From Selaginella moellendorffii (taxonomy: Eukaryota; Plantae; Lycopodiophyta): a stretch of 64,000 bases of DNA. The stretch spans positions 1,447,928 through 1,511,927 of the forward strand of contig NW_003314307.1 in NCBI RefSeq assembly GCF_000143415.4, given 5' to 3'. The notes under the pieces are model-generated. The model ran no database searches, was not told the DNA's origin, and saw only the letters and a list, made by a program, of their open reading frames with translations. This document shows positions 34,461-64,000 of the stretch, piece by piece; within the stretch, counting starts at the first letter, position 1; each line of letters begins with the position of its first letter. A program made the position numbers and the translations under genes.

Positions 34461-36434
<1,974 letters not shown>

Positions 36435-44210: not shown

Positions 44211-44270
44211 AGGGTTTAGGGTTTAGGGTTTTAGGGTTTAGGGTTTCGGTTTAGGGTTTAGGGTTTAGGG
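44211..44270 (+). repeat. Most proximal TTTAGGG tract
   Basis: About 8 plant telomere repeats joined directly to unique sequence. Confidence 0.97.
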
Positions 44271-44334
44271 TTTAGGCGCGTTTAGGCGTTTAGGGTCAAA
44301 GACACCCCGTGGTGTTGCAATCCGGCGAGATCGC

Positions 44335-47300
44335 TGAACGTGTATGTACATTCCCCATGTCCCAATGGGACTAATACAAAAAATGGGCGTGCCGCCCTCT
44401 CCATGAGCTACTCTACGTGATCCTCATATGCCGCAGCTAGACCTAGTCCTGGAGTAGAAGTGGACGTGGTCGTCTCGAGCGAATCATGTCGATGTCCAAG
44501 TCTCCCCCACGAGCTGACCTTAGAACAGAGTCTGGGGGGCGCCATTGCCAGCGAATCTCGCCACCTCCCAATTTGCCGAAGCATGGGAGCCACCTAGATC
44601 TCCACTCCTTGAGCTGCCTCGGTTTCGCCCGCTCTTTCAGGATGGTGTAGTGAAGACGCACCGCTGCAAGAGTGAGTCTCCACCATGATGCCACCACTGC
44701 CGATATTCTCGCTTGTTGCCCATCAAAGCGACAGTGGTTCCGCGCCTCCCAAAGTGCCTGCAGTCCTGTTGCCCTCCAAATGGACCAGCGCTCTTGGCCC
44801 AACGCCTCCCAGATGGACATCCCAACTTCAGCCCCTGTCACGTCCCACCGGACTCGCATGTTCCATCGGTGCCGTCCGTAGCAGCGAATACGCCTCCAAG
44901 CTGGACCAATGGCTGGGCCTCTGGCTCCCTCAAACCAGTGGAGGATATCCCCACTCCGAGCCTCAAACTCTGGAATGTCTCCGAGTTCCTGCGTCGCCTT
45001 GAAGATCTGTCGCCAAACTTCTCTCGCCACGTCGCATTCCCATAGGACATGTTGCGCTGTCTCCAACTCGCCACACTCCTTGCACCGTCGGCATGCTTCT
45101 TCCTGGAACCGCTGTCCTACCGGCAGCCCGTTATTTGCCACCAACCAAGAGGTGGCCTTGACTTTCTCCTGTACCGGTAGTTTCCAGAACGCAAGCGTGT
45201 TGCCCACCACCTGATTTGCTTCAACTCCTTGCTCGATCCATTTCTTCCAGAGCTTGGGGATCTCCCCTCGGGCCTCCTCCCTGCTGGTCAAGAGACCATC
45301 CCTTGCTTCCTTGACGCCGAAGGAGAAGAAGCTCCTCGCTCCTCGTTTCCATGCTGCGGGGTCCCAATCCAGATCCTCGATGAGCTGCTGTCGCCACCAT
45401 CTAAGAATGCCTTCCCCTTCTAGTGCAGCCAACGATTGAACCACCACCGATTGTTTCGGAGCCTGTCGTATTACTCGAATCCTACCCTTGACCTCGTCAT
45501 CCGTCACCATCGGCATGACCTGTTCGTCCCCTGCTGGCAACAGCATGTCGCCTCTCAAGACTCGAAAAGGACGCCCAACATTTTGGTCTGGAGACACAAC
45601 GAACCATACCTCCACATCCCTGTCCTCCCAAGCTGGTGTTGGGGCCGTAAACGCCCGTGTCCAGGCCCCCAAGCTAACTCGTTCCCTGTCTGACTCCACG
45701 TCCCGTTGTAGAGCCACAAAGTCTCCAGATTTGAGACAACGCCTAGGCCAGAGCTGCCCCTGCTTCGCCTCACTCACTGCTCTGATAATGCGAAGAAGAT
45801 CAAGGTGGACTTTCCTCCACCGTCCCGGGTTAAAGACCTGCATATGTCTCGTAGTCTTCCTCCTGTCCTTGTCCAGAACCCGCACCAGCTGCTTGAGAGT
45901 TCGGAAGCCTGCGCTATGTAGCTTTCTCCAGATTGTGTAGTGGTCCTCCCTGCCCAGTGTCCTATCATCCAGTTTGAAGAGGTCGTTGAAGAACAGGGGC
46001 TGGTTCAGCCAGTCCTCCGCTCGCCCTGGCAATTCCCTACTGACTGGAAACGCGCTCCATAACCGGAGAAGCCCCTGGACTAGAGTGCCGCCCTTGACTA
46101 CTTGCTTCGGCCCCTCAGCAAAGAGCCAACGTGGATCTTCTTCCCACGGTCTTGCAGTGTTGTGCTTGGGCCGGATTGCCAACAAGTTCTGCCTAAACAT
46201 GAGTCTCCAAGGTTGATTACCTGGTTGAAGGCCCATGAGGAGGATTTTGTACCGTAGCGCCTTCGCCATGTCACTCGGATCGATTACTCCAAGTCCTCCC
46301 AAGACTCGCGGACGTGCTGTAGATTGCCACGCGACCTTGGCCATGCTCCTCCCTGTGACCAGAGCGCCCCGCCACAAATACTGACGGACCATCGTGCGTA
46401 CCTTTCTAAGAGTGCGTTCTGGAACAGGCCAGATGGAGAGGTGGTACCAGATGCCAGGCAGAATGATGCTCCTAGCGACTACCACTCTCGCTGGCAAGCC
46501 GAGTTTCCGGGGAGCCCACTTCTGGATTGACGTTCGTACCCGTCGGAGCAAGGTGTCATCCTGAAGTGCTGCACTGAACCGAGTACCAACCTGGATCCCC
46601 AGGTACCTAGCGTCTTCTCCTGGTTTGAGCCACTGGAAGCCAATGTCCTGCCCCCAAGATTCGATGCCTGGTCGCCCCCAATTTATGCCCACTGATTTGT
46701 TCCAGTTAATTGCTGCACCAGCCGCGAGGTTGAACGTCTCCAGCGCCTTCTTAGCTGCATCCATGTTCTCCTTAGTCGCAAGTAGGAACAAGGCAGTGTC
46801 GTCCGCAAAAGCACCATCAAGGAGTTCCCGAGACACCCTTGTGGTTCCCGGAAGTTGCTGTCTCGCAGCCGGCAGTGTGAGTCCTTTAATGCGTCCGCCT
46901 TCCGCTAGAAACGTGCCCAGGGCCTCAGCCACAATCAGAAAAAGATAGGGTGCTAGTGGACACCCTTGGCGTACTGAACGTCCCAGCTGGAAACTCGGTC
47001 CCGTCTCGCCATTGATTGTGACTCTGCTTGTGGCTCCTCGGTATAGTAACGAGATCCTAGTGACCATCTCTCTCGGGATGCCGATCGTGTTCATGCACTC
47101 CTCTAGGAACCTCCAGTCCACCCGATCGTAGGCCTTCTCGAAGTCCAAAAGCCATGCTGCAGTTTGTTGGTTAGAGATCTCTGCCCATCTCTGAGCCAGC
47201 AGGTACGTCCAGATGTTTTCTGCGATTTGCCGCCCTGGAACAAACCCTGTCTGCTGCTCCCGGATGATCAGCGGCATGACAGCTTGGAGCTTGAGGGTCA

Positions 47301-50300
47301 TTGCTTTGGCATAGACCTTGTAGGACGTGTTGAGCATGGTGATTGGCCTCCAATTCTTCAGCTCCTGCAGGTCCCCCCTCTTTGGAATAAGCGCAATCTG
47401 GCCCTCAAGGATCTCGCGAGGCAAGGTCCCATCACGTTGAGCATCCCACCATGCTTGTAGCAGCAGCGGGCCTATGGTCTCCCAGTGCTCCTCGAAGAAA
47501 ATGGGCAAGAGGCCATCGATACCTGGCTGCTTGTCGTTGCTGAGCTTCCCGAGCGCTTCCCGAAGCTCCTCCAGTGTGAAGTCCGTCTTCAGTGAGTCGT
47601 GCCACTCATGGGGGACTCGCTGGGGAAGGGACGCAAGCACTTCCACCGCCGCCCTTTCCCTCTCTGGAGTCCACTGCTGGGCCGTATATAGAAGTTGGTA
47701 AAACTCCTGGGCGAGCTGTTGCATCCCCTGTTGGTCCTCGATGACTCGCCCGTCACTGTGCTTCAGTCCTAGAATGGGAGGAGAGTCCGTCACTGGCCTG
47801 ATTCCCCTAAAGAAAGCCTTGTTGAGAAGGCGTTCATTCAGGGCCCATCCATCTTCCATGGCCCGGACGCCCTTGCTCCATGCAGCGTACTCCATGTCAC
47901 GTAGCTCGGCTTCACGTTCATCCAGTATTGTTTGCCACTTGAGCTCATCTTGCGTGTTCAGCAACATCCTGTGTGCTGCTGCGACCTTCTTCCTGGCCAG
48001 TCTAAGGTCCTTCATCACCACCCCTTTGAGATCCTTCTGGCGCGCCCGGAGCTTCTGTGAGCAAGACAAGAGCACAGGGATCAGTCCCAGCTTGTTCTGC
48101 GCAAGGGCGTCATGTATAAGCCCAATTGCCACCGGGTCTCGCAGCGTGGCTCTAGTGATTGATCGTTGGACCGCTGTCCCTTTGTCCCTTTGGAGCTGGA
48201 TCACGCATCTGAGGGGGTCGTGATCTGAGAAGGAGGCAAATCCCAGCCACGTTTTTAGGCTTCCCCCATCCTGCCGTATGCGAGATGAGGCGTAAATCCG
48301 GTCCAGTCTCGACTGGGAGGATACTGTCTGTCGCCTTGTAAAAGGGTGAGCATGAGGTGCGAATCCCGCAGCATGCTGGAGGTCCATGAGCCCCAGTATG
48401 TCCATGAGCTGACTCCACTGCTTCTGTTCACGTGGCTGAATTGTTTCCTGCATACCCCTGCGATCACAGACGTCCTCGACCATGTTGAAATCTCCCAGGA
48501 CCAGCCATTCATCTGCTTGCCCCTGTGCAGACTGTAACACACTCAGCCAGAATTCTGCACGTCTCCCTTTCTTCGTTGGTGCATAGACGTTGATTATCCC
48601 CACCCGTCCAAAGTGGAGGTGAAGGACAAGCAATTGAGCCTTTCCTGGGACGAGAACAAGGTGGTTTCGTACCTGAGCAGACCATTTGGTTGAGACTACC
48701 ACTGCTGTGCCCCCTCCTGGTCTGGCCACTGCTTGCGTGGCCGGGTTCCACCAGAGCCGTCCCCTCATTCCAAAGGTGTAGTCTGGGGCCACAGTCATTT
48801 TGTGCTCTTGCAAGCATAGGATGTCGATATCTCCTTCTAAGCTGATCTCTCGGATGTGGGACTTGAGCTGCGCCCTTTTGTTGAGTCGACTGCCGGTCCA
48901 ACTGAGTCCCCGGCAGTTCCAGGTGACGAGCGTGAGAGTTGTCATGGAGCCACGTACTTCCAAGAAAGTGAGGAGTTACGGGGTCTCGCCCTCCATTCTG
49001 TGGAGATGGTCCACACCGCAGTCATCTTCCCCCTGTGCTTCGTCCAGGAGAAGCCTCGGACAGTGTACTTCGCAAAGCCCGTCCACTCAGTGATAGCACT
49101 CTCCATGCGTGTGTGGTAGTCTCCAATAGTGACAACCTCTGGGAAGGCTGTGTTCCCGCGGCACATCAGCCAGTCTCCCGCCTCTGTGGGACTTAATTCC
49201 CGCTTAGGGGGAATCCACCTGACCGCCATTCCTACTGTTCGAGGGAGGACCGGCTGGAAGCCATCTCCTTCGACATCCGTAATAGGTCCCTCGAACAGTT
49301 TGGGCTGTGAGGATGAGCCCAAGAGTGGTGGGGTGACCGGGAAGCGAATGTGGGGAGCTTGGTCCGGAGGGCGTGCCTTCAAGATCCGCTCCTGCTCTGC
49401 AGGTAACTCAAACGGCTTCTGGGATGCCAACCTGTTCCGCTTGACTGAGCAGGCCTCCTCCCGGTGTCCAGCGCGCTGGCAAAAGTTGCATCTAGGTTCT
49501 GAGTTCTCCGTTTGGATCCTGATATACTGGCCCAGCACTGCGATCTCTGTCGGGATTTCAGCCGGGGCTGACACGAAAACTTTGAGACGGATGGGACCTA
49601 GCACACCCTCTGCTTCTACAGTGTCGAGGCCGGCCGCTATCTGGCCAATACTTCCTTCAACCAGCTCCTGTATCACCGGTGTGATCCGCATTTCCATGGG
49701 AACGTCCCACAATGCAATGTTCACTGGAAAGCTCCCGCCCTTGAGACGAGCCTGGTCCTCTGCGGTGAACCTTGGGATCCATGGGTGGAATGACACCGCC
49801 CAATTCTCGTCAATGAGGCCATGCATGGCCTCCGCCTGAGACCGTGCCTCCTCTGTCTCAAAGACAACTGTGTAGCAGCCCTTCCCATGCGGCAGCATCT
49901 TCTTCATGAGGATTCCCTGGCCCAGCGTTGCATTGATCCAATCGTTAGCCATGCGACCTGTTGGGAACTTCCCCCTGAAAACAGCAATCAGTGCCTTCTT
50001 GCGGAGTTCCTCTTCCTTCTCTGCTACTGCTCTTTGCAGAGTCTCAGCCAGCTTGACAGGGACGGCCTTTCCTCTCGTGTCGTCGTGGACCAAGTCACTT
50101 CCACCTTCCCCTACTGCTGCCACCTTGTGCTCTTCGGCCTGACCATGTGTTCCCTCGTTCACTTTATGTGAGGTGTACTCCTTGTTAGCATCACTGTTCC
50201 CGTCCGAGGAGTGCAGCGCTTCTACCACCTTTCCGCAGCCCCGAGTCTTCCTCACTCTCGACTGGGCTTTTGCCACTCGCTCCGGGGTGTCAACCTCCTG

Positions 50301-51143
50301 GTGCTGGTACGCCCGAGACTCTGTTCTCTTGTCTGGCAGGGCGTGCTCCTCCTCAAGGAAGGCTTCAACTGTGTTTGTCCAGGCTGGGTCCTCCTTGGCA
50401 AGTCTCAGAGTTTTAAGCTTCCGCCGCGTTGCTCGCTTCACTTTCTTCTTCTCACGCTTGGTCTTCCTCTTGTTGAAGGCATCGCGGTCCTGGAACTGAA
50501 GTGTACCATCTGACTGTTCCTCCAGTGAGCACTCCATCTCTGGCTCTGTTTCTGGCTCTCCGAGTCCCACTTCAACTGTTGGTGTTGGCGTGGTAGCCAC
50601 TTTGCCACCTTGTTCTTGCGCCCATGCATCGAAGAGGTCTGCTTGCTGTGTGGCCACTGCCTTCGTGATTATCCCTTGAGCTTCACGCAGTGCAGGGCCC
50701 AACACGAGGTCCTCTCCCAAAGGACTCAGATCCAGCTCTCTGATCGTGCACATCAGGGTTGACTGGAGTTCTTTGCGTACGGGAAGCGGAGAACTTTGGA
50801 TCCTTTCCTCAAAGTGGTGGGGGTCCCAGACCAGCCTCCCTGCCTTGTCGAGTCGTGGGAGTGGAGAGGGAAGCGACTCCTTCTGCTCCTCGTGTGGTGT
50901 TGTGGGAGAGTCCGGATCTGATTTCCTCACTTGTTGTAAGTGCGCAGGGTCCACCTGGTGTGTTTCCTCCTGTACTCTTGCATGTACTAGATCAGGGATG
51001 AGCCCGGCCACGTCTGTAGGAGTTTCTGGGTGGGACAGGGGGTTCCCACCAGCTGGGCATGAACTTGACGCATTCCCGTAAGCAGGGAGTGTGCCAGCTG
51101 CGCAGTCCTTCCGAGTCTTAAGGTTCTCTGTTAGAATTGCGAG
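44335..51143 (-). mobile_element. L1/Tx1-like non-LTR retrotransposon, 6.8 kb, 18-bp TSD
   Basis: GCAATCCGGCGAGATCGC at 44317-44334 and 51144-51161, single-copy in uninterrupted heads; ORF1 + ORF2; no poly(A). Confidence 0.96.
44443..48963 (-). CDS. LINE ORF2: APE endonuclease + RT + C-terminal zinc finger (1506 aa, intact)
   Basis: TWNCRGL, LCLQE, NVYAP, GDFN, RLDRI, SDH; PGIDG, WRPI, LDFEKAYD, RQGCPLAP, FADD, YLG; CRRC...ETAQHVLWEC. Confidence 0.97.
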   Translation of the reverse strand: MEVRGSMTTLTLVTWNCRGLSWTGSRLNKRAQLKSHIREISLEGDIDILCLQEHKMTVAPDYTFGMRGRLWWNPATQAVARPGGGTAVVVSTKWSAQVRNHLVLVPGKAQLLVLHLHFGRVGIINVYAPTKKGRRAEFWLSVLQSAQGQADEWLVLGDFNMVEDVCDRRGMQETIQPREQKQWSQLMDILGLMDLQHAAGFAPHAHPFTRRQTVSSQSRLDRIYASSRIRQDGGSLKTWLGFASFSDHDPLRCVIQLQRDKGTAVQRSITRATLRDPVAIGLIHDALAQNKLGLIPVLLSCSQKLRARQKDLKGVVMKDLRLARKKVAAAHRMLLNTQDELKWQTILDEREAELRDMEYAAWSKGVRAMEDGWALNERLLNKAFFRGIRPVTDSPPILGLKHSDGRVIEDQQGMQQLAQEFYQLLYTAQQWTPERERAAVEVLASLPQRVPHEWHDSLKTDFTLEELREALGKLSNDKQPGIDGLLPIFFEEHWETIGPLLLQAWWDAQRDGTLPREILEGQIALIPKRGDLQELKNWRPITMLNTSYKVYAKAMTLKLQAVMPLIIREQQTGFVPGRQIAENIWTYLLAQRWAEISNQQTAAWLLDFEKAYDRVDWRFLEECMNTIGIPREMVTRISLLYRGATSRVTINGETGPSFQLGRSVRQGCPLAPYLFLIVAEALGTFLAEGGRIKGLTLPAARQQLPGTTRVSRELLDGAFADDTALFLLATKENMDAAKKALETFNLAAGAAINWNKSVGINWGRPGIESWGQDIGFQWLKPGEDARYLGIQVGTRFSAALQDDTLLRRVRTSIQKWAPRKLGLPARVVVARSIILPGIWYHLSIWPVPERTLRKVRTMVRQYLWRGALVTGRSMAKVAWQSTARPRVLGGLGVIDPSDMAKALRYKILLMGLQPGNQPWRLMFRQNLLAIRPKHNTARPWEEDPRWLFAEGPKQVVKGGTLVQGLLRLWSAFPVSRELPGRAEDWLNQPLFFNDLFKLDDRTLGREDHYTIWRKLHSAGFRTLKQLVRVLDKDRRKTTRHMQVFNPGRWRKVHLDLLRIIRAVSEAKQGQLWPRRCLKSGDFVALQRDVESDRERVSLGAWTRAFTAPTPAWEDRDVEVWFVVSPDQNVGRPFRVLRGDMLLPAGDEQVMPMVTDDEVKGRIRVIRQAPKQSVVVQSLAALEGEGILRWWRQQLIEDLDWDPAAWKRGARSFFSFGVKEARDGLLTSREEARGEIPKLWKKWIEQGVEANQVVGNTLAFWKLPVQEKVKATSWLVANNGLPVGQRFQEEACRRCKECGELETAQHVLWECDVAREVWRQIFKATQELGDIPEFEARSGDILHWFEGARGPAIGPAWRRIRCYGRHRWNMRVRWDVTGAEVGMSIWEALGQERWSIWRATGLQALWEARNHCRFDGQQARISAVVASWWRLTLAAVRLHYTILKERAKPRQLKEWRSRWLPCFGKLGGGEIRWQWRPPDSVLRSARGGDLDIDMIRSRRPRPLLLQD

Positions 51144-51185
51144 GCAATCCGGCGAGATCGCGGCACCACTTTGTGCAATCCACAT
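48942..51185 (-). CDS. LINE ORF1 (gag-like, RRM/DUF4283-like region, CCHC knuckle)
   Basis: CNFCQRAGHREEAC (CX2CX4HX4C); overlaps ORF2 by 22 nt; the ATG at 51185 lies in flanking PLE sequence, outside the TSD. Confidence 0.85.
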   Translation of the reverse strand: MWIAQSGAAISPDCLAILTENLKTRKDCAAGTLPAYGNASSSCPAGGNPLSHPETPTDVAGLIPDLVHARVQEETHQVDPAHLQQVRKSDPDSPTTPHEEQKESLPSPLPRLDKAGRLVWDPHHFEERIQSSPLPVRKELQSTLMCTIRELDLSPLGEDLVLGPALREAQGIITKAVATQQADLFDAWAQEQGGKVATTPTPTVEVGLGEPETEPEMECSLEEQSDGTLQFQDRDAFNKRKTKREKKKVKRATRRKLKTLRLAKEDPAWTNTVEAFLEEEHALPDKRTESRAYQHQEVDTPERVAKAQSRVRKTRGCGKVVEALHSSDGNSDANKEYTSHKVNEGTHGQAEEHKVAAVGEGGSDLVHDDTRGKAVPVKLAETLQRAVAEKEEELRKKALIAVFRGKFPTGRMANDWINATLGQGILMKKMLPHGKGCYTVVFETEEARSQAEAMHGLIDENWAVSFHPWIPRFTAEDQARLKGGSFPVNIALWDVPMEMRITPVIQELVEGSIGQIAAGLDTVEAEGVLGPIRLKVFVSAPAEIPTEIAVLGQYIRIQTENSEPRCNFCQRAGHREEACSVKRNRLASQKPFELPAEQERILKARPPDQAPHIRFPVTPPLLGSSSQPKLFEGPITDVEGDGFQPVLPRTVGMAVRWIPPKRELSPTEAGDWLMCRGNTAFPEVVTIGDYHTRMESAITEWTGFAKYTVRGFSWTKHRGKMTAVWTISTEWRARPRNSSLSWKYVAP

Positions 51186-51286
51186 TCTCCGTGTGCCGTT
51201 GTCGAAACGGCGTGATCAAGAGCAAGTAGAGGAGGCAAGGGAATGAATTTTCATTCATTCGTGAGCGAGGGAGAGGACAAGAGACA

Positions 51287-51329
51287 ACCCGAGACCGGTT
51301 TCATCCTTTTTGGGACTCATCAGCCGGGT
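51287..51329 (-). ncRNA. Type I hammerhead ribozyme (helix II G-U variant)
   Basis: Minus strand ACCCGG-CUGAUGA-GUCCCAAAAAGGAU-GAAA-CCG-GUC^UCGGGU. Confidence 0.85.
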
Positions 51330-52479
51330 GTAGTCGTCTAGTGTCTACCCTAACCCTAGCTCGGTGCCGACTCTACTTATATTTTGGCTCTGTCACATGG
51401 CGCAAGTCCGTGTGGCGGCCATGCGAAGTGGCGTGGCAGCGTTGGCTTGCGAGGGTGCGAATGTAGCACAGCTGGTGTTGGTTACTCCACAGCAGTGGTA
51501 GTCGCGGAGAATGACTTCGGCGGATCGCCGAAGACAGTAAACATTCGGCCGGCGGGTGACGTACCTTTGACGCAAGATAACTTGTAAACGCGGCATGATA
51601 TGATGCATGCGTTACGTCCACAATGCTTGTGTCACTTGTACGTACCCGACGACGAAAAACGTGGTCCACTTTGCAAGGAATATTCTGGGAATATTCCGTC
51701 GTTGACTGTTGACCCCGCGTTGACCGTGTGTGGACTGGGATGGTGGAGGGCCTGAGGTCACTCATACATACCCGGAGTCCAGCGGTGATGCAGGGGAGAG
51801 CCATCCCGCGAGCTGTCGGCATGCGTCGCCGATGTCGAAGGAGCAGCACCGTTTTAACGGAAAACACGCTTTTCAACGAATCGTGTGTGGAGTTCAGAGT
51901 TGAAACTCACATATTCACGATCGGAAGGAAAAGCGGAATCCAACGGTATATGCCGTTTTGACTCGGTCAACAAAAACACTGTCAGGGAATATTCGGGAAT
52001 ATTCCATTCTGACCGTTGACTCCGCGTTGACCGTGCGTTGACTCGCAAGGGAGGTGGCCTGGAGTGACTAGTACGTACCCAAGGTCCTTCGCTCATGCAG
52101 AAAGGTCCTTTTCCCGTGAGGTGTCGGCGCGTGTGGCGTCGACGTCGTCGCATGGCACCATTATGAGATTCGCAAGCTTTCCAAGGTGTGGTGTCCATCG
52201 TAAGGAGATGAGACCAACGTAGTCACACTTGGAAAGGGGTGCAGAATCGAATGGTGTAGGCCTCGTTGACTCGGTCAACAATCTGACTGTCAGGGAATAT
52301 TCGGGAATATTTCTGTTTGGACAGTAGACTGAGCGTTGACCGGGCGTTGACCGGTGGGGGACGACCTGGGGTGACTGGGACATACCTAGAGTCCATTGGC
52401 CAGACCCTGAAGGTCATCGGTCATGCGGAGAAGGATGCAATCATATGCTTCCGTCTCTTGCAAAGTGCGGTAGAAGATG

Positions 52480-53139
52480 TGGCTGAGCTCGCAATGCGAG
52501 TTTAGCCCTGACCAGGAACGAACCGGGGTTCAGGAGGCATCTCCAGCACGTGATCACTCAGGGGAGTGCGTCTACGGGAGCTTCATCCATCACCTGTTTA
52601 GGGTTTAGGATGTCCCCCAAGCCTAGCTGCATGCTGTGAAGCGTGTAGGGCAGCTTAAAGGCGAGGGGGGCCCGTCGACAAGCGTCACTAGAGCGGCGCA
52701 AGCGTGCAAGGAGAGCTTGATGTCACTGGTCAGAGGAGATGCTGGAGAGGCAGTGTTGGAGGAAGGAGATCAGGTATCCCTGGGCACAGAGGCGGTGGTA
52801 GAACCGCGTGCGCATGGCATGGAATCCATCGGCCGTGCTCTCACGGAGGAGGTATCTCCGGAGTTCGCTGTGGATAAATGCCACTTTCTGGTGCCATGGG
52901 TGAACTGACGTCCAGGGGAGGTACTGGTAGGCATTGAGCGGCTTCTGGAACGTGGACGAGTCGAGGCAGCGTGTCTCTTCAAAGCGAGGGCCTTTGAAGA
53001 AGTGGATATCGAGGATATCCAACTCCTCGAGCGAGATCACCGAGGTGATCTTGATCGAGGGACGTAGCGTGCCGTATCCTCGGAGCCATCGTTCGAGGCC
53101 TGCTCGTGTACCTGTCCCTCCGTCATCTGTGTACCTCCG
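52480..53139 (-). pseudogene. PLE reverse transcriptase C-terminal remnant (unit A)
   Basis: RRYTDD (YTDD at 53122-53133) in frame with LDILDI...FQKPLNAYQYLPWTSVHPWHQKVAFIHSELRRY...GY; stops on both sides; no GIY-YIG. Confidence 0.85.
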
Positions 53140-55476: not shown

Positions 55477-56436
55477 TTACTCCACAGCAGTGGTAGTCGC
55501 GGAGAATGACTTCGGCGGATCGAGAATGACTTCTGCAGTCAAAGGGCCAGGGTTGGCAGGGAGGACCCCGTGCGGGTAGGCTCCACGGTCCCGTAGGAGG
55601 GACTCAAACGTATCCTGGAATTGAGATCTGACGTAGCGATATGGAAAGTTTGCCACGTAAAAAGAGCGGAGGTCTCTCTGATGGCGTGGGGCTCGAAGTG
55701 CACGTGGCAGATCCGGCATGGGGAACCGGCACATTGGCTGGACAGCCACGTGTTCCACATGCGCCACGTGCTCGGTGCCCTCAGCCTGGGAAACCTCCTG
55801 CTCCGATGTTGGGCTGTCGCAATTCGCCGTGGGTGATGCTGCCGTGTTTGCCATGCAGCGCTCCTGTGCAGCAGAGTGTGGACCGTGTCTCATACTCTGC
55901 TGCAGCCTGCTCATGTCAGGGCTGCGCGCCACAGAGTCCGAGGAGTTCTGTGGTGTGGCCGTGTCAGAGGAGGTGGGAGGTCGCTGCAATGCCGAACATA
56001 GTGCCTCGTTGCAGAAAAAGTTGGCAACACTCGAAAGAGTGTCGTCTTGCTCCAGGTTCTCCAAACGCGTCTCAATGTGAGCCGTGATGACACGCGTAGT
56101 GCGGAGCCGCAGCGCACGTCTAGTGTCCAGAACTCGCTTGAGGTACGGCGAGAGTGGTCGGTGCGACGCACGTTCGTCGTAGATGGCCTCAGCGAGGAGC
56201 TGGGAGTGTTCACGCGACGAGGTAGCTCGTGACGTGGTTCCCAGCTCAGATTGGAGCACTGGAGCTGGAGGAACTGGAGCGTAACCTGTCTCTGCAGTAG
56301 TCATGGCGTGGTTGGAGCTCCCTGGTGCTGCTGGCCCTGGTGGCATGAGCGGTGAGGGGTCCATGACGTCGTGACTGTCTGGTATAGGCACTAGAGCAGC
56401 AGATGGTAAAGGTGGCAGTGGCGTCGCTGGCATCAC
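55477..56436 (-). CDS. Hypothetical 319-aa protein carried by unit B
   Basis: Sense to the element; Pro/Ser-rich N-terminus and helical core (HSQLLAEAIYDER...IETRLENLEQ); no family recognised. Confidence 0.45.
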   Translation of the reverse strand: MMPATPLPPLPSAALVPIPDSHDVMDPSPLMPPGPAAPGSSNHAMTTAETGYAPVPPAPVLQSELGTTSRATSSREHSQLLAEAIYDERASHRPLSPYLKRVLDTRRALRLRTTRVITAHIETRLENLEQDDTLSSVANFFCNEALCSALQRPPTSSDTATPQNSSDSVARSPDMSRLQQSMRHGPHSAAQERCMANTAASPTANCDSPTSEQEVSQAEGTEHVAHVEHVAVQPMCRFPMPDLPRALRAPRHQRDLRSFYVANFPYRYVRSQFQDTFESLLRDRGAYPHGVLPANPGPLTAEVILDPPKSFSATTTAVE

Positions 56437-57059
56437 TGGGCGTCACTGGTGGCAGCCGTAGTGCTGGGGACAGCCACGGTGCTAGAGACGCTGCGCGGCG
56501 CTGGGCGGCGCGGGGCGGTACCGGGCGGTACCGGGCGGTACCGCGCGTCACTGGGCGGTGCCGGGCGGTACGAGCGGTACCGCGCGTCGCTGGGTGAGGC
56601 CGGGCGGTACCGGGCGGTACCGGGCGGTGTCGCGCGTCGCTGGGTGGTGCGCGGCGCGCGTGGAGCGGCCCTGGGCGGCGTGCAGCAGTGCGTAGCAGCC
56701 CGTGGTGCTGCTTGGCGCTGCTGGGCCGGCCAAGCCGCGGCGCGTTGGGCGGCGAGTGCTCGCCCAAGCGTTGGGTGTGGCCGCCGCGGGCGGCTGGCCG
56801 AGATGTGGCAGCCGCGGCAGCTGCTGGCGTTGGCGGCAGCTGTAGCTGCTGGCGTTGGCAGCGGCTGTGGCTGGCGCTGGCTGGGTCGCCGGCTGCTGCT
56901 GCTGGCAGGGCCGATTTTTTCTGCTGTTAGCCCCAAGCAAGAAAAACGGAAAAGGCCCTGCCTCCAGAGAGGAGGAGAGGGCAGGGCAGACCTTGAGCCG
57001 TAGACTGGCAAGCTCAGAAACAGCTGCTGCGCTCACGTGCTTTCTCACGTGCTAAAACC

Positions 57060-57170
57060 GGTTTAGGGTTTAGGGTTTAGGGTTTTAGGGTTTAGGGTTT
57101 AGGGTTTAGGGTTTAGGGTTTTAGGGTTTAGGGTTTAGGGTTTAGGGGTTTAGGGTTTAGGGTTTAGGGT
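57060..57170 (+). repeat. TTTAGGG spacer
   Basis: About 15 repeats with T4/G4 variants. Confidence 0.97.
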
Positions 57171-57258
57171 TTTAGGCGCGTTTAGGCGTTTAGGGTCAAA
57201 GACACCCCGTGGTGTTGCAATCCGGCGAGATTGCGGCACCACTTTGTGCAATCCACAT
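57171..57258 (-). mobile_element. PLE unit C (88-bp head only)
   Basis: Head truncated at ATCCACAT. Confidence 0.9.
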
Positions 57259-57371
57259 CCCTAAAACCCTAAACCCTAAACCGGTTTAGGGTTTCCGGTT
57301 TTAGGGTTTAGGGTTTAGGGTTTACCGGTTTTAGGGTTTAGGGTTTAGGGTTTAGGGTTTAGGGTTTAGGA

Positions 57372-57801
57372 TTTAGGCGCGTTTAGGCGTTTAGGGTCAA
57401 AGACACCCCGTGGTGTTGCAATCCGGCGAGATCGCGGCACCACTTTGTGCAATCCACATTCTCCGTGTGCCGTTGTCGAAACGGCGTGATTGAGAGCAAG
57501 TAGAGGAGGCAAAGGAATGAATTTTCATTCATTCGTGAGCGAGGGAGAGGACAAGAGACAACCCGAGACCGGTTTCGTCCTTTTTGGGACTCATCAGCCG
57601 GGTGTAGTCGTCTAGTGTCTACCCTAACCCTAGCTCGGTGCCGACTCTACTTATATTTTGGCTCTGTCACGTGGCGCGAGTCCGTGTGGCGGCCATGCGA
57701 GGTGGCGTGGCAGCGTTGGCTCGCGAGGGTGCGAACGTAGCACAGCTGGTGTTGGTTACTCCACAGCAGTGGTAGTCGCGGAGAATGACTTCGGCAGATC
57801 G
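57372..57801 (-). mobile_element. PLE unit D (head + hammerhead)
   Basis: Same head, truncated at GGCAGATCG and capped by TTTAGGG. Confidence 0.9.
57561..57603 (-). ncRNA. Type I hammerhead ribozyme
   Basis: Core identical to 55282-55324. Confidence 0.93.
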
Positions 57802-57901
57802 GTTTTAGGGTTTAGGGTTTAGGGTTTAGGGTTTAGGGTTTAGGGTTTAGGGTTTAGGGTTTAGGTTTAGGGTTTAGGGTTTACCGGTTCAGGGTTTAGG
57901 A

Positions 57902-58838
57902 TTTAGGCGCGTTTAGGCGTTTAGGGTCACAGACACCCCGCGGTGCTGCAATCCGGCGAGATCGCGGCACCACTTTGTGCAATCCACATTCTCCGTGTGC
58001 CGTTGTCGAAACGGCGTGATCGAGAGCAAGTAGAGGAGGCGAGGGAATGAATTTTCATTCATTCGTGAGCGAGGGAGAGGACAAGAGACAACCCGAGACC
58101 GGTTTCGTCCTTTTTGGGACTCATCAGCCGGGTGTAGTCGTCTAGTGTCTACCCTAACCCTAGCTCGGCGCCGACTCTACTTATATTTTGGCTCTGTCAC
58201 GTGGCGCGAGTCCGTGTGGCGGCCATGCGAAGTGGCGTGGCAGCGTTGACTCGCGAGGTTGCAAACGTAGCACAGCTGGTGTTGGTTACTCCATAGCAGT
58301 GGTAGTCGCGGAGAATGACTTCGGCGGATCGCCGAAGACAGTAAGCGTTCAGCCGGCAGGTGACGTACCTTTGACGCAAGATAACTTGTAAACGCAGCAT
58401 GATATGATGCATGCGTTACGTCCACAATGCTTGTGTCACTCGTACGTACCCGGCGACGAAAAACGTGGTCCACTTTGCAGGGAATATTCTGAGAATATTC
58501 CGTCGTTGACCGTTGACCCCGCGTTGACCGTGTGTGGACTGGGATGGTGGAGGGCCTGAGGTCACTCATACATACCCGAAGTCCAGCGGTGGTGCAGGGG
58601 AGAGCCATCCCGCGAGCTGTCGGCGTGCATCGCCGATGTCAAAGGAGCGGTACCGTTTTAACGGAATACACGCTTTTCAACGAATCGTGTGTGGAGTTCA
58701 GAGTTGAAACTCACATATTCACGATCGGAAGGAAGAGCGGAATCCAACGGTATATGCCGTTTTGACTCGGTCAACAGGGATACAGTCGGAATATTGGGGA
58801 ATATTCCGTTCTGTGTCGGAATATTGGGGAATATTCCG
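57902..58838 (-). mobile_element. PLE unit E (5'-truncated)
   Basis: Near-identical to the first ~0.9 kb of unit F (offset 986); ends with a short duplication of GTCGGAATATTGGGGAATATTCCGTT before telomere repeats. Confidence 0.9.
58091..58133 (-). ncRNA. Type I hammerhead ribozyme
   Basis: Identical core. Confidence 0.93.
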
Positions 58839-59076
58839 TTTAGGGTTTAGGGTTTAGGGTTTAGGGTTTAGGGTTTAGGGTTTAGGGTTTAGGCGCGTTT
58901 AGGCGTTTAGGGTCAAAGACACCCCGCGGTGCTGCAATCCGGCGAGATCGCGGCACCACTTTGTGCAATCCACATTCTCCGTGTGCCGTTGTCGAAACGG
59001 CGTGATCGAGAGCAAGTAGAGGAGGCGAGGGAATGAATTTTCATTCATTCGTGAGCGAGGGAGAGGACAAGAGACA

Positions 59077-59119
59077 ACCCGAGACCGGTTTCGTCCTTTT
59101 TGGGACTCATCAGCCGGGT
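59077..59119 (-). ncRNA. Type I hammerhead ribozyme
   Basis: Identical core. Confidence 0.93.
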
Positions 59120-59965
59120 GTAGTCGTCTAGTGTCTACCCTAACCCTAGCTCGGCGCCGACTCTACTTATATTTTGGCTCTGTCACGTGGCGCGAGTCCG
59201 TGTGGCGGCCATGCGAAGTGGCGTGGCAGCGTTGACTCGCGAGGTTGCAAACGTAGCACAGCTGGTGTTGGTTACTCCACAGCAGTGGTAGTCGCGGAGA
59301 ATGACTTCGGCGGATCGCCGAAGACAGTAAGCGTTCAGCCGGCAGGTGACGTACCTTTGACGCAAGATAACTTGTAAACGCAGCATGATATGATGCATGC
59401 GTTACGTCCACAATGCTTGTGTCACTCGTACGTACCCGGCGACGAAAAACGTGGTCCACTTTGCAGGGAATATTCTGAGAATATTCCGTCGTTGACCGTT
59501 GACCCCGCGTTGACCGTGTGTGGACTGGGATGGTGGAGGGCCTGAGGTCACTCATACATACCCGAAGTCCAGCGGTGGTGCAGGGGAGAGCCATCCCGCG
59601 AGCTGTCGGCGTGCATCGCCGATGTCAAAGGAGCGGTACCGTTTTAACGGAATACACGCTTTTCAACGAATCGTGTGTGGAGTTCAGAGTTGAAACTCAC
59701 ATATTCACGATCGGAAGGAAGAGCGGAATCCAACGGTATATGCCGTTTTGACTCGGTCAACAGGGATACAGTCGGAATATTGGGGAATATTCCGTTCTGA
59801 CCGTTGACTCCGCGTTGACCGGGCGTTGACTCGAAAAGGGGGGTGGCCTGGAGCGACTTTGGACATACCTGAAGTCCATCGGCCAGACCCTGGGAGTCAT
59901 CGGGTACGCGGGGAAGGATGCAAACATATGCTTCCGTGTCTTGCAAAGTGTGGTACAAGACATGG

Positions 59966-60643
59966 CTAAGCTCGCGGAGGGAGCTTGGCCCTGACCAGGA
60001 ACGAACCGAGGTTCGGGGAGCGTCTCCAGCACGTAATCACTCGGGGGAGTGTGTCTGCGGGAGCTTCATCCATCACCTGTTTAGGGTTTAGGATGTCCCC
60101 CAAGCCTAGCTGCGTGCTGTGAAGCATGTAGGGGAGCTTAAAGGCGAGGGGGGTCCGTCGACAAGCGTCGCTAGAGCGGCGCGAGCGTGGAAGGAGAGCT
60201 TCATGTCGCTGATCAGAGGAGATGCTGGAGAGGCAGTGTTGGAGGAAGGAGATCGGGTGTCCCCAGACACAGAGGCGGTGGTAGAACCACGTGCACATGG
60301 CATGGAATCCATTGGCCGTGCTCTCACGGAGGAGGTATCTCCGGAGCTCGCTGCGGATAAATGCCACTTTCTGGTGCCATGGGTGAACCGACGTCCAGGG
60401 GAGGTACTGGTAGGCGTTGAGGGGCTTCTGGAACGTGGACGAGTCGAGGCAGCGTGTCTCTTCAAAGTGAGGGCCTTTGAAGAAGTGGATATCGAGGATA
60501 TCCAGGATATCCAACTCCTCGAGCAGGATCACCGAGGTGATCTTGATCGAGGGACGAAGCGTGCCATATCCTCGGAGCCATCGTTCGAGGCCTGCTCGTG
60601 TACCTGTCCAAGTGCTCACTCCGTCATCTGTGTACCTCCGTAG
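59966..60643 (-). pseudogene. PLE RT C-terminal half (YTDD to thumb), no endonuclease
   Basis: YTDD at 60623-60634 in frame with ORF 59966-60619 (QYLPWTSVHP, SELRRY, WRRSPNLGSFLVRAKL); N-terminal RT motifs not found. Confidence 0.87.
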
Positions 60644-62875
60644 ATGGAAGGGCGATTTGTTGGTTGTGTCGAGGCACTCGTCGAGTCTGTGGGGACAGTG
60701 TTGAGCGTGGTGCCATGGACGCGCAGAGCAGAGCCAGGTGCAGAGGTGACGGTGGCTGCTGCGCTGGGCCAGGTCCTGGAGAGCGTTAAGGCGAGAGGGC
60801 TCGCTGCTCTGTTCCAGTGGCAGGGGCTGGCTTGGGTGGCGATTGCAAGGGATCCGGCATCAGAGGTGGTGAGAGAGCCCGTGCCATCGGCATAGTGCCT
60901 GGCTTTGCAGTTGCAGGGCCAGTGCTAGCACTGGTGATTGCAGGGGATCCATGGCAGATTGGATTTTTGGCAGCGTTGTGGCAATGTCTAGGCAGCTTGG
61001 GTGCTCTGAGTGGCAGGGAGCATTCCCATTGGCATCTTTGGTGATCCTTTGGTGGTGCCAAGGCAACATACCAAAGGGGCACAAAAAGCCTTTGTGAGGG
61101 ATTTGCTGTGCCATACCCAGGTCAGGGGAGCTGGGCTGCGCTAGACGTCGAAAAGACTGCAGAGTGGAGATGTCAAGCTAGCTCCCAAACTCTTAGTGGC
61201 CGTGAGCAGCTCCAGGTGGGGATCTTTTGTGGCGCTCTGGTGGCAGAACGCAGCGCGCAGAGGCCAGTGTGAATGCCCAGCCTGGAGACATGTTGTGCCA
61301 GACCCGTGCGAGGGGAGTGAGGGGCATCGTGCCAGAGATCACAACAGCTTTGTGGTGATGTCTGGGTGGCACGGGTGCTCTCAACAGCAGGGAGCAGTCC
61401 CCTTAGCATTTTTGGAAATCCCTTGGTGGTGCCGAAGCAGCAGCCGAGGGGGGCCAAAAAGCCTTTGTGGGGCATTTGCTATGCCGGACCTGAGTCGGGG
61501 GAGCTGGGCCGCACCAGATGCCAGAAAAGCTGTTGTGTGGAGATGCCAAGCTAGCTCCAAGACTCTTAATGGCTCCAGGCGGGGATTTTTTTGGCGTCTT
61601 GGCAGTGAGGTGCAGCGCATGGGGGCCTACGTAAATGCCCGGCCTGGAGCCGCTGGGCGGCACTGGACTGTACCGCCTGTCTCTGGAAGTACTGCGTGTC
61701 GCTGGGCAGTGCCGCGCGTCACTGTGCAGTACCGCGCGTCGCTGGGCGGTGCCGCACGTCACTGTGCAGTACCATGCGTCGCTGGCGGTACAGCACATCG
61801 CTGGGCGGTGCTGGGCACACGTGAGCAGCACTGGGCGGCACGGGGCGGCACTAGGCAGTACGCAGCGGCTCTGGGCAGCACGTGGCGGCCCTGAGCAGCG
61901 TGCGGTCGTGCCTGGCACAGTGGAGCACTGCTGGGCAGCGCTGGTGGTGCTGCTGGGCAGCGGCTGGCCGGGATGCGGTGCTGACGGGCTGGGCCACGAC
62001 GAGCCACAGAGCTGGCGCTTTGGGCGGCGAGTGCTGGCCCAAGTGCTCGCTGTGGCGGTCGCTGGAGGCCGGCCGTGGCACAGCTGGCTGGCCGGCTGGC
62101 ACAGCAGCCGCGGCAGCTGTTGGTGTTCGCAAGCCGCGGGCTGCTGCGATGGCTGGCGCTGCCTGCGTCAGCGGCTGTTGCTGCTGGAGCAGCTGGCTGT
62201 GGTGGCCTGGGCCGTGGCGTGCTCAAGACGCAGCGGCCATGCTCCCGTAGCTTCCTCTACCATTGCCAAAAACCAAGTGCTAGGACTTAGAAATTTCTGG
62301 CAACTCAAAGGCTGAGCGTTTGAGCCGTTGGATTTGTGCGATCCGACGGTGGAGGAGAGAGGAGAGGGGAGCGTGAGTCAGCCTTTGCAATGGCTGTTGT
62401 TGTTGCAAAGGCTTCTCCCATGGTGGATTTTGGTGAGGCACAGCAATTGCTATGGTGATCTCTGGGGCTCTGTGTGGCAGGGAGCAGCTCCCTTGGCATT
62501 TTTGATGATCTCTTGGTGGTGCCAAGGCACTGGACCAAAAGGGGCAAAAAGCCTTTGTGGGGAGTTTGCTATGCCAGACACGATTCAGAGGAGCTGGGCC
62601 GCAGGAAACACCAAAAAGATTGTTGTGTCGAGAAGCCAAGCTAGTTCCCGGACTCTTAGTGGCAGTGAGCAGCTCCAGGCAGGGATTTTTTGTGGCGCTG
62701 TGGCGGCGAGGTGTGGCACACAGGGGCCAACGCAAATGCCTGGCTTGGGGACTTGCTGTGCCAGACCCTGGCGAGGGGAGAGAAGGGCACATGGCTGGTT
62801 TCTCGACATGGGTTTAGGGTTTAGGGTTTAGGGTTTAGGGTTTAGGGTTTAGGGTTTAGGGTTTAGGGTTTAGGG

Positions 62876-63080
62876 TTTAGGCGCGTTTAGGCGTTTAGGG
62901 TCAAAGACACCCCGCGGTGCTGCAATCCGGCGAGATCGCAGCACCACTTTGTGCAATCCACATTCTCCGTGTGCCGTTGTCGAAACGGCGTGATCGAGAG
63001 CAAGTAGAGGAGGCGAGGGAATGAATTTTCATTCATTCGTGAGCGAGGGAGAGGACAAGAGACAACCCGAGACCGGTTTC
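62876..63080 (-). mobile_element. PLE unit G, truncated inside the hammerhead
   Basis: Ends GAGACCGGTTTC, then CGGTTTAGGG repeats. Confidence 0.9.
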
Positions 63081-63139
63081 CGGTTTAGGGTTTAGGGTTT
63101 AGGGTTTAGGGTTTAGGGTTTAGGGTTTAGGGTTTAGGG

Positions 63140-63569
63140 TTTAGGCGCGTTTAGGCGTTTAGGGTCAAAGACACCCCGTGGTGTTGCAATCCGGCGAGAT
63201 CGCGGCACCACTTTGTGCAATCCACATTCTCCGTGTGCCGTTGTCGAAACGGCGTGATTGAGAGCAAGTAGAGGAGGCAAAGGAATGAATTTTCATTCAT
63301 TCGTGAGCGAGGGAGAGGACAAGAGACAACCCGAGACCGGTTTCGTCCTTTTTGGGACTCATCAGCCGGGTGTAGTCGTCTAGTGTCTACCCTAACCCTA
63401 GCTCGGTGCCGACTCTACTTATATTTTGGCTCTGTCACGTGGCGCGAGTCCGTGTGGCGGCCATGCGAGGTGGCGTGGCAGCGTTGGCTCGCGAGGGTGC
63501 GAACGTAGCACAGCTGGTGTTGGTTACTCCACAGCAGTGGTAGTCGCGGAGAATGACTTCGGCAGATCG
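63140..63569 (-). mobile_element. PLE unit H (copy of unit D)
   Basis: Same endpoints and diagnostic bases as 57372-57801. Confidence 0.9.
63329..63371 (-). ncRNA. Type I hammerhead ribozyme
   Basis: Identical core. Confidence 0.93.
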
Positions 63570-63669
63570 GTTTTAGGGTTTAGGGTTTAGGGTTTAGGGT
63601 TTAGGGTTTAGGGTTTAGGGTTTAGGGTTTAGGTTTAGGGTTTAGGGTTTACCGGTTCAGGGTTTAGGA

Positions 63670-64000
63670 TTTAGGCGCGTTTAGGCGTTTAGGGTCACAG
63701 ACACCCCGCGGTGCTGCAATCCGGCGAGATCGCGGCACCACTTTGTGCAATCCACATTCTCCGTGTGCCGTTGTCGAAACGGCGTGATCGAGAGCAAGTA
63801 GAGGAGGCGAGGGAATGAATTTTCATTCATTCGTGAGCGAGGGAGAGGACAAGAGACAACCCGAGACCGGTTTCGTCCTTTTTGGGACTCATCAGCCGGG
63901 TGTAGTCGTCTAGTGTCTACCCTAACCCTAGCTCGGCGCCGACTCTACTTATATTTTGGCTCTGTCACGTGGCGCGAGTCCGTGTGGCGGCCATGCGAAG
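63670..64000 (-). mobile_element. PLE unit I (copy of unit E, runs off the window)
   Basis: Carries the GGTCACAGAC variant otherwise unique to E. Confidence 0.9.
63859..63901 (-). ncRNA. Type I hammerhead ribozyme
   Basis: Identical core. Confidence 0.93.

Follow-up and report, generated by a model that had tools for sequence, protein, structure and literature searches.

Penelope-like elements that lack an endonuclease (EN-minus PLEs) join telomeric G overhangs via reverse-complement telomere repeats located beside a hammerhead ribozyme (PMC8557442), and type I hammerheads have been described in PLE pLTRs of Selaginella moellendorffii (PMC4209133; Cervera & de la Peña 2014). The Coprina elements Sm1 and Sm2 and an RT-plus-telomerase model go back to Gladyshev & Arkhipova 2007 and are restated in PMC13159263, while the mechanism of telomere attachment is named for the EN-minus PLEs of S. 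moellendorffii in PMC8557442, PMC4209133 and PMC13159263. The array described here shares with the Coprina PLEs (RepBase Sm1, Sm2) the species and the telomeric location, reverse-complement telomere repeats at the RNA 3' end with a type I hammerhead nearby, 5' truncations, telomere repeats between copies, and a proposed order of events in which reverse transcription on a G overhang is followed by telomerase. However, its units do not contain a Penelope reverse transcriptase (RT), and they are compared to Sm1 and Sm2 by described features.

The window, i.e., the whole stretch of 64,000 nucleotides that was analysed, originates from an old Sanger-era draft assembly comprising two haplotypes, and its base 64000 corresponds to base 1,511,927, the final base of GL377611.1 (GCA_000143415.2) of S. 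moellendorffii. GL377611.1 stops within the last unit of the array (unit 9) and not in a pure telomere tract; a true chromosome-terminal position of the array is likely. The features are listed here with their window positions.

44211 to 44270, plus strand: first telomere tract, which abuts AT-rich unique DNA; the chain of retro-units starts here
44271 to 54973, minus strand: unit 1, the longest module copy (3876 bp), split by a 6809-bp LINE
44271 to 44334, minus strand: 3' tail of 64 nt (the "head" on the plus strand), with degenerate telomere-complement repeats plus the hairpin's right half
44317 to 44334, no strand: target-site duplication GCAATCCGGCGAGATCGC, 18 bp, copy at the LINE 3' end
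44335 to 51143, minus strand: LINE of the L1 clade, 6809 bp, 5'-truncated by about 1.4 kb compared to full-length relatives, no poly(A) tail
44443 to 48945, minus strand: LINE ORF2, 1506 codons, uninterrupted, with APE endonuclease, RT (FADD motif) and zf-RVT
48942 to 51185, minus strand: LINE ORF1 with CCHC knuckle, native N-terminus missing
51144 to 51161, no strand: target-site duplication, 18 bp, copy at the LINE 5' end
51287 to 51329, minus strand: type I hammerhead of unit 1, 35.6 bits, predicted cleavage between 51293 and 51292
51330 to 54973, minus strand: non-coding 5' part of the module in unit 1, with internal repeats of about 300-370 bp and of 20-40 bp
51515 to 51533, no strand: palindrome of 19 nt, whose centre corresponds to the end of units 4 and 8 and to the template change of unit 2
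54974 to 55092, plus strand: telomere tract with abortive heads at 55016 and 55062
55093 to 57057, minus strand: unit 2, first 430 bp of module (hammerhead 55282-55324), then a divergent 5' part of 1.5 kb
57171 to 57258, minus strand: unit 3, 88 bp, then an inverted telomere repeat (57259-57291)
57372 to 57801, minus strand: unit 4, 430 bp, hammerhead 57561-57603
57902 to 58837, minus strand: unit 5, 936 bp, hammerhead 58091-58133
58888 to 62812, minus strand: unit 6, 3925 bp, module positions 1-430 at 58888-59317, hammerhead 59077-59119, predicted cleavage between 59083 and 59082, 5' part 87% identical to that of unit 1
62876 to 63080, minus strand: unit 7, 205 bp, ending inside the hammerhead, 10 nt past the predicted cleavage site
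63075 to 64000, no strand: units 8 and 9 with their telomere spacer, a duplicate of 57305-58232, hammerheads 63329-63371 and 63859-63901

The head motif TTTAGGCGCGTTTAGG occurs 11 times in the window, exclusively on the plus strand, compared to 0 occurrences expected. Nine of these heads open the co-oriented units that an earlier note on this DNA had pointed out (starts at 44271, 55093, 57171, 57372, 57902, 58888, 62876, 63140 and 63670), and two further ones, at 55016 and 55062, are abortive heads of about 20 nt each within a telomere tract. Exact matches to (TTTAGGG)3 (n = 45, spanning 44250-63627) were found on the plus strand only, and the telomere G strand therefore points to the right end of the window. 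TTTAGGG tracts separate all units of the array, and the heads carry on the preceding telomere repeat in register. Telomere repeats on both sides of a unit are also expected from an endonuclease-made insertion into an internal tract. Units 1 to 9 measure 10703 (3876 without the LINE), 1965, 88, 430, 936, 3925, 205, 430 and at least 331 bp. Since all other units are collinear with unit 1 from its position 1 and shortened at the distal side only, the description given by the same note (a common proximal head, variable distal truncation and a TTTAGGG cap) is borne out: the common end is centromere-proximal, the truncation points are distal, and TTTAGGG follows each unit. The units have seven different distal end points, the sequence subtypes GTGGTGTT and GCGGTGCT are interleaved, and the telomere tracts joined to the truncated ends differ in length and register from unit to unit. 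The polarity of the array fits a minus-sense RNA primed on a G overhang.

The 64-nt 3' tail is common to all nine units and in each of them ends with CCCTAAACGCCTAAACGCGCCTAAA, followed by (CCCTAAA)n; it is also included in RNA reads. Its predicted fold is a hairpin (-31 kcal/mol, z-score -2.6). A search with the Rfam model Hammerhead_1 (RF00163) returned seven matches, all on the minus strand and all above the gathering score of 34 (35.6-40.5 bits), starting at 51287, 55282, 57561, 58091, 59077, 63329 and 63859, so that the seven complete minus-strand hammerheads reported earlier hold. Each is of type I and lies on the sense strand, 195 nt from the tail; the hammerhead of unit 1 differs by a single change in helix II, from G-C to G-U. 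The motif measures 43 nt, and its helix III is formed by a short palindrome. Two units end before the motif is complete, unit 3 (88 bp) and unit 7 (205 bp), and the hammerhead is intact in all units that reach it. As six of the nine units extend through it, cleavage is not required for an RNA to be used as template. None of the nine units stops at the predicted cleavage site, which speaks against the end-primed copying of module RNAs favoured below. Among the related loci L002-L004, no hammerhead exceeded the Rfam threshold, and the copy in L003 is decayed.

The units thus combine reverse-complement telomere repeats at the 3' end, a hammerhead near the tail, and a fixed polarity with 5' truncation and a telomere cap, all of which are features of the PLE type. 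A Penelope-type RT (DKN, RT1-7, thumb; no GIY-YIG), and with it the intact EN-minus PLE RT with the same head for which the earlier note had suggested looking, was absent from the window and from five related loci (L002-L006), where all RT sequence was of L1 type. ORFs in L002 and in a 4.5-kb stretch of L003 upstream of its related module gave unrelated weak matches only. Because the units lack a Penelope RT, we file them as a PLE-type 3' module or a non-autonomous derivative and not as an autonomous member. In the 3.7-kb 5' part, 16 ORFs were without Pfam matches, and substitutions between units 1 and 6 in this part lacked codon periodicity; the 306-residue ORF of unit 2 yielded weak matches only (at most 0.77) in an atlas search. 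The modules look non-coding and non-autonomous, or like just the 3' third of a larger element.

Stranded RNA data, which had been proposed as a check, gave a consistent result, with the mates of all 95 reads pointing the same way, which under the usual library convention fits minus-sense RNA, i.e., the hammerhead strand. Position 51144 is crossed into the head by 12 RNA reads and 1 contig, and a LINE-free form with a telomere-like tail therefore exists as a transcript. Across the hammerhead, RNA depth drops approximately 3- to 5-fold, while DNA depth is flat. Judged by DNA contig depth, the module is about 10 times as abundant as the LINE, for which 0 RNA reads were found in two libraries.

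The earlier statement that no unit encodes a full RT does not apply to unit 1, since the ORF2 of its nested LINE is complete, uninterrupted and of L1 type. Pfam assigned Exo_endo_phos, RVT_1 and zf-RVT domains to ORF2, the FADD and APE motifs are present, and its best solved relative is human L1 ORF2p (E = 6e-50). A homology search with the whole ORF2 returned only plant L1 proteins, 25-30% identical, and exact-sequence look-ups of ORF1 and ORF2 gave no match. ORF1 has the knuckle pattern CxxC...HxxxxC, its stop overlaps the ORF2 start (ATGA), and its first 14 codons, including the ATG, derive from the host module. The LINE is bounded by a perfect 18-bp repeat, the 8 neighbouring units have the empty site, and the single copy of the 18-mer corresponds to the inner hairpin of the module. 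The own 3' end of the LINE (...CACGTTCA) is not present in the modules, and it adjoins the module 18-mer, not telomere repeats. We take the LINE for a passenger that either entered unit 1 later or travelled along with it. At its 3' end, a poly(A) or A-rich tail is absent, which is atypical for L1 and usual for site-specific LINEs.

A 17-18-bp site flanks both sides of LINE copies at three loci, where the LINE truncations fall at positions 1409, 4737 and 7551, counted along the full-length element; this includes differently truncated copies in the same site at GL377602.1 and GL377587.1. A fourth LINE 3' end also abuts the site, so that the 18-mer and tail follow every LINE 3' end seen (4 loci). 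The 5' ends of full-length LINEs directly abut the tail plus CCCTAA in 4 of 4 cases seen; in the full-length copy in L004, the upstream site is not recognisable. The use of the same site with different 5' truncation points at further loci indicates a site-specific targeting of the module by the LINE, which is new here and is read from the sequence. In this process, the LINE endonuclease would cut to either side of the docking hairpin's inner stem-loop, giving rise to the 18-bp duplication. Based on the three independent insertions and the four full-length 5' ends that follow tail plus CCCTAA, we tentatively propose that the L1-clade LINE lives as a parasite specialised on the telomere-docking module. 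Read-through into the tail could dock full-length LINE RNAs on chromosome ends and, in this window, the module may supply the hammerhead and the in-frame ATG. The converse relationship, with the short units as internal-deletion derivatives of a telomere-targeted LINE (as in TRAS/SART or MoTeR), was rejected, because the 18-bp duplication around the LINE is perfect and corresponds, as a single copy, to the module's inner hairpin, because the LINE in the window is 5'-truncated compared to full-length relatives, and because two other loci have other truncation points in the same site.

Regarding the growth of the array, we consider it probable that the scaffold end consists of cDNA copies of a non-coding module RNA, strung head to tail and made by an RT acting in trans together with TTTAGGG extension and block copying. 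This RNA would consist, from 5' to 3', of a repeat-rich non-coding region (up to about 3.9 kb), the type I hammerhead, and 195 nt ending in the hairpin and degenerate CCCUAAA-like repeats. Its C-rich tail would pair with the telomeric G overhang, and the trans-acting RT, most likely the published endonuclease-deficient Penelope-like (Coprina) RT of S. moellendorffii, would extend the chromosome 3' end along the module RNA. Synthesis would halt variably, after about 20 nt, after 88 nt, within the hammerhead, at the palindrome at 430 nt, or beyond. The new 3' end would then be lengthened with TTTAGGG, by telomerase or through pairing with the tail of the next RNA, before the cycle repeats, and blocks would also be added by unequal exchange or break-induced copying (units 8-9 from units 4-5). 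We infer the identity of the copying RT, the capping by telomerase, and the priming at an end rather than insertion into an internal tract; the link between the modules and the Coprina RT is drawn from the literature.

Part of the array is better explained by copying of DNA. The segment 63075-64000 is a copy of 57305-58232 with 99.35% identity, irregularities of the telomere tract included, and units 5, 6, and 7 are 99.3-99.6% identical across their common parts. Going by this match, units 8 and 9 arose from units 4 and 5 by duplication of DNA, and the near-identical block could partly be an assembly effect. Since one block was duplicated as DNA, the window holds at most seven independent additions. 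The earlier proposal of an array built by a trans-acting PLE RT and telomerase is supported in part, in agreement with the polarity, the in-register heads, the type I hammerhead 195 nt from the tail and the published mechanism. The same identities, with odd telomere bases shared between the two segments, and the draft nature of the Sanger-era source would also suit an array in which one or two original retro-additions were multiplied mostly as DNA and not by repeated reverse transcription, through unequal exchange between sister chromatids or ALT-like, break-induced copying, or partly by assembly collapse or expansion. We regard this as unlikely, given the seven distal end points and the two interleaved subtypes, the differing length and register of the telomere tracts that the truncated ends meet, and the abortive heads, which are hard to make by recombination.

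The L1-type LINE itself could be the engine, with its ORF2 protein copying module RNAs that would have the 3' cassette of the LINE in common with it, as SINE-like partners do, at telomere ends or nicked repeats and without a Penelope RT. An uninterrupted ORF2 with APE and RT lies inside the array, the 18-mer and tail follow every LINE 3' end seen, all four full-length 5' ends abut tail plus CCCTAA, and L1 RT is able to extend uncapped telomeres without its endonuclease. However, the 18-mer occurs on both sides of three differently truncated LINEs, which identifies it as a target-site duplication and not as a shared LINE tail, and the modules lack the LINE's own 3' end. Furthermore, hammerheads are a Penelope hallmark, and we know of none reported in L1 elements. 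Together with the lower abundance of the LINE and the lack of LINE reads in both RNA libraries, this makes an L1 engine improbable. Still less credence is due to the idea that the units entered pre-existing internal telomere tracts via an endonuclease nick, in the fashion of TRAS/SART, and not by priming at a free end. Telomere repeats on both sides of every unit and an active-looking APE endonuclease encoded nearby are compatible with such an entry. However, the modules encode nothing, and the sole endonuclease in sight acts at a non-telomeric site, where it leaves duplications of 18 bp. Moreover, abortive heads and in-register joins fit a base-paired priming at ends, and the published model for this family is endonuclease-independent (PMC13159263).

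End-primed copying of module RNAs, as favoured here, is largely the published model of EN-deficient PLEs and thus already known; the "hybrid telomere-elongation system" of the earlier note is this published combination of PLE RT and telomerase and not a new system. The array is a base-level example of the published idea that a telomerase-related retroelement and telomerase together extend a plant chromosome end. It adds detail and no new principle, namely abortive 20-nt starts, stops at palindrome and ribozyme, LINE-free transcripts reaching into the tail, and block duplication. If true, a plant L1-type LINE that targets the docking hairpin would be a new case of a mobile element specialised on another; it might ride the telomeric element to chromosome ends, and the two would bring together in nature an endonuclease-dependent RT and an end-primed one, both acting on one RNA tail.

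Beyond Coprina, the array resembles the bdelloid rotifer Athena elements and Terminons (Arkhipova et al. 2017, cited after PMC8557442 and PMC12477314) in its long chain at a chromosome end, the C-rich 3' repeats of the template beside a hammerhead, and the foreign sequence captured within units or between them. In contrast, Terminon units exceed 40 kb and hold many ORFs, whereas the array units range from 88 bp to 3.9 kb and their passenger is a LINE with its own endonuclease. The telomeric arrays of TRAS/SART in Bombyx, HeT-A/TART/TAHRE in Drosophila and MoTeR in Magnaporthe are made by their own LINE-type RT. They likewise consist of co-oriented, 5'-truncated copies at chromosome ends, and those of Bombyx and Magnaporthe are interleaved with telomere repeats, as here. 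However, the repeated unit of our array has a hammerhead and no RT, and the LINE does not abut telomere repeats: its 3' end meets the module 18-mer, in contrast to the TRAS/SART type, in which the own 3' end sits on telomere repeats in a fixed register.

Retrozymes possess two LTRs with type III hammerheads, a PBS and a PPT, and circular RNAs copied by a Ty3-type RT. Like plant retrozymes, the modules would be non-autonomous hammerhead RNAs that need an RT in trans. However, they have one type I hammerhead per unit, a telomeric tail and no LTRs or other terminal direct repeats, and the label "retrozyme-like" used in the earlier note was therefore dropped. For the LINE, the closest parallels are site-specific non-LTR elements such as Tx1L, a LINE within Tx1D of Xenopus, and R1/R2 in rDNA, of which R2 uses an upstream ribozyme of the host transcript. 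The LINE shares with them the repeated insertion at one short sequence in a multicopy repeat, an exact 3' junction without poly(A) and a target duplication of fixed length; it differs in being an L1-like plant element whose target is the docking hairpin of a telomeric retroelement. Just as rDNA transcripts and an HDV-like ribozyme serve R2, the module may serve the LINE, with the difference that the upstream ribozyme is here the hammerhead of the host module, a putative aid to the LINE.

An intact, intronless PPR gene (window positions 24530-26209) encodes a protein identical to one on scaffold GL377611.1 (assembly GCA_000143415.2), where the gene occupies bases 1472457-1474136 of 1,511,927; therefore, window base 64000 is the final base of the scaffold. 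Its named relatives come from Selaginella moellendorffii. TTTAGGG occurs only on the plus strand and only from 44211 onwards, and the G strand thus runs 5' to 3' toward the scaffold end, as expected for a right-hand chromosome end. GL377611.1 breaks off within the last unit of the array, and its end is likely the true chromosome terminus. On the inner side of the first telomere tract, the PPR gene region (24464-26209) lies approximately 18 kb and a protein-kinase exon (34866-35873) approximately 8 kb from it, so that ordinary genes extend close to the array.

The array structure is real. The head motif, which is the shared plus-strand start of each unit and corresponds to the telomere-like 3' tail of the minus-strand sense RNA, was found 11 times in the window, always on the plus strand, compared to 0 matches expected. 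Nine of these matches confirm the co-oriented unit starts listed in the earlier note (44271, 55093, 57171, 57372, 57902, 58888, 62876, 63140 and 63670, units 1 to 9), while the remaining two (55016 and 55062) represent starts of approximately 20 nt that return to telomere repeats. Each head is in register with the repeat before it. The minus-strand hammerheads proposed for seven units were recovered as 7 Rfam type I matches above the gathering score, and self-comparison bore out the shared head with variable distal truncation, since the units align collinearly from the head, with only the distal stop varying (88, 205, 430 (two units), 936 or 3925 bp; unit 1 reaches 3876 bp without its insert).

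Sequence features within the array:
51515-51533, unit 1: 19-nt palindrome with an 8-bp stem; equivalents near 55510, 57790 and 63558
57058, 57274 (minus strand), 57281, 57884, 63080 and 63652: CCGG-telomere joins, at unit ends and also within tracts (TTTACCGGTTTTAGGG)
57259-57291, following unit 3 (88 bp): perfect palindrome, CCCTAAACCGGTTTAGGG, in which three C-strand repeats meet G-strand repeats

Units 4 and 8 are both truncated at the centre of the 19-nt palindrome, and at the same base unit 2 switches to a 1.5-kb sequence only weakly similar to the usual 5' part; next to this join is an 11-nt repeat, AGAATGACTTC. The stop of unit 7 is located 10 nt past the predicted ribozyme cleavage site. 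In 5 of the 6 distinct distal ends, the last bases ahead of the repeats are G or GG. CCGG immediately before a telomere repeat (CCGGTTYWGGG) occurs 6 times compared to 0.1 expected, and ACCGGTTT is also the plus-strand helix III segment of the hammerhead. The palindrome at 57259-57291 could represent either a fold-back or template switching to a G-rich template. Furthermore, two tail subtypes were observed, CCCCGTGGTGTT in the heads of units 1-4 and 8 and CCCCGCGGTGCT in units 5-7 and 9, which alter the tail hairpin in its outer stem (U-A vs U-G, C-A vs C-G); the RNA reads have the second subtype, CCCCGCGGTGCT.

The mechanism advanced in the earlier note, with a Penelope-like element (PLE) reverse transcriptase (RT) acting in trans and telomerase, is essentially the one reportedly published for S. 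moellendorffii in 2007, and the array finding was therefore already known. Most likely, the array grew as published, through rounds of end-primed reverse transcription, each followed by the addition of telomere repeats. The two abortive heads show that synthesis often aborts after approximately 20 nt and then re-primes, and it tends to stop at structured sites (palindrome and hammerhead). Region 63075-64000 repeats the block 57305-58232 at 99.35% identity, irregular telomere-tract bases included; part of the growth thus appears to have occurred at the DNA level, and the duplication leaves at most 7 independent additions in the window. Since transcripts extend more than 100 nt beyond the head, RNA tails may have templated some of the spacer repeats, and telomerase need not be the source of all of them.

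The claim that no unit encodes a full RT needs correction. Unit 1 measures 10.7 kb owing to a 6809-bp LINE insert (44335-51143) with two long minus-strand ORFs: ORF1 contains a CCHC knuckle, and ORF2 (1506 codons) contains APE endonuclease, RT and zf-RVT domains, with human L1 ORF2p as its best solved relative and the catalytic motifs in place. Database relatives are plant L1-like proteins of only 25-30% identity. A public gene model, SELMODRAFT_420524 (43970-51185; 352 aa, 7.2 kb with predicted introns), sits on the LINE and its flank and is an annotation artefact of the transposon. A perfect 18-bp direct repeat flanks the insert (44317-34 on one side, 51144-61 on the other), and the other eight units have one copy of it, the empty site; on the sense RNA, this 18-mer forms the inner stem-loop of the stable tail hairpin.

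Relatives of the LINE were retrieved from the genome via annotated fragments of ORF1. Full-length copies have approximately 1.4 kb extra at the 5' end, showing that the window LINE is 5'-truncated. At least 160 codons are missing from its ORF1, which is joined in frame to 14 codons from the module (the repeated unit of 5' part, hammerhead and tail), and these supply its sole ATG. A copy on GL377602.1 (locus L003) is truncated at position 4737, and one on GL377587.1 (L005) and its twin GL377697.1 (L006) at position 7551, each with the same site on its flanks. Three distinct 5' break points, each abutting an intact upstream site, do not easily arise from deletion or a shared LINE tail, and the best account of the window, GL377602.1 and GL377587.1 copies is that each arose by its own target-primed insertion, which points to a LINE with site specificity. 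The alternative that the short units are deletion derivatives of the LINE was rejected on the same grounds. Moreover, the LINE 3' end is followed by the site in all four copies compared (window, L003, L005 and a further locus, L002). The four full-length copies (in L002, L003, L004 and L005) share one 5' start position, immediately preceded in each by a short tail ending in CCCTAA, and their 3' ends are missing or interrupted. One reading, which we infer from this arrangement, is that a full-length LINE within a module would be transcribed from its own 5' end with read-through into the tail; this RNA would dock like module RNA and be copied as far as its 5' end; after capping, a further unit would dock on top. 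What the present analysis adds is evidence for repeated targeting of the docking hairpin by the LINE.

At L003 (17190-21858), the full-length LINE is interrupted approximately 380 bp before its 3' end by sequence that, judged by eye, looks like an LTR retrotransposon RT of the Ty1/copia type. Module, truncated LINE and full-length LINE are arranged alike in L005 and L006, and the flanks are near-identical; L006 has an extra 7-kb insertion within the LINE. L005 and L006 are probably two haplotypes of one locus, separate in the assembly.

All 95 reads aligned from two stranded RNA libraries have the same mate direction, which by the usual library convention would make the module RNA minus-sense, the hammerhead strand. 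Reads map to the 500 nt closest to the tail and to parts of the 5' region, and none maps to LINE ORF1 in either library. Twelve reads and one contig cross 51144 into the head; thus, the LINE-free form is transcribed together with the telomere-like tail. Identity to the window locus is 95-99% for most reads, which therefore derive from other copies. Reads from both libraries also diverge from the reference into other sequence at 53117, 53210 and 53323, and the transcribed 5'-region copies are structurally different from the window locus. RNA depth falls several-fold across the hammerhead, where DNA contig depth is flat, which fits some self-cleavage, although the counts are small and no read-end pile-up was reported. 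DNA contig depth of the module is approximately ten times that of the LINE and declines toward the distal 5' end, as expected from 5'-truncated copies.

No Pfam match was obtained in ORFs outside the LINE in the window, the longest ORF of unit 2 had no credible neighbour in an atlas search, and codon positions are evenly represented among the 248 substitutions that separate units 1 and 6; together, these results argue that the module 5' part, which is repeat-rich, is non-coding. The description of the units as retrozyme-like does not fit, as their hammerheads are of type I. The link of the module to a Penelope RT rests on the literature, in which Coprina Sm1 and Sm2 are listed for S. moellendorffii (PMC13159263). 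Endonuclease-deficient PLEs are characterized by a reverse-complement telomere tail, a nearby type I hammerhead, and fixed telomeric polarity with 5' truncation (PMC8557442, PMC4209133, PMC13159263). While the Penelope RT, their defining enzyme, was not seen in the window or any locus read, the module has all three of these non-enzymatic marks and is therefore filed as a PLE-type 3' module or a non-autonomous derivative.
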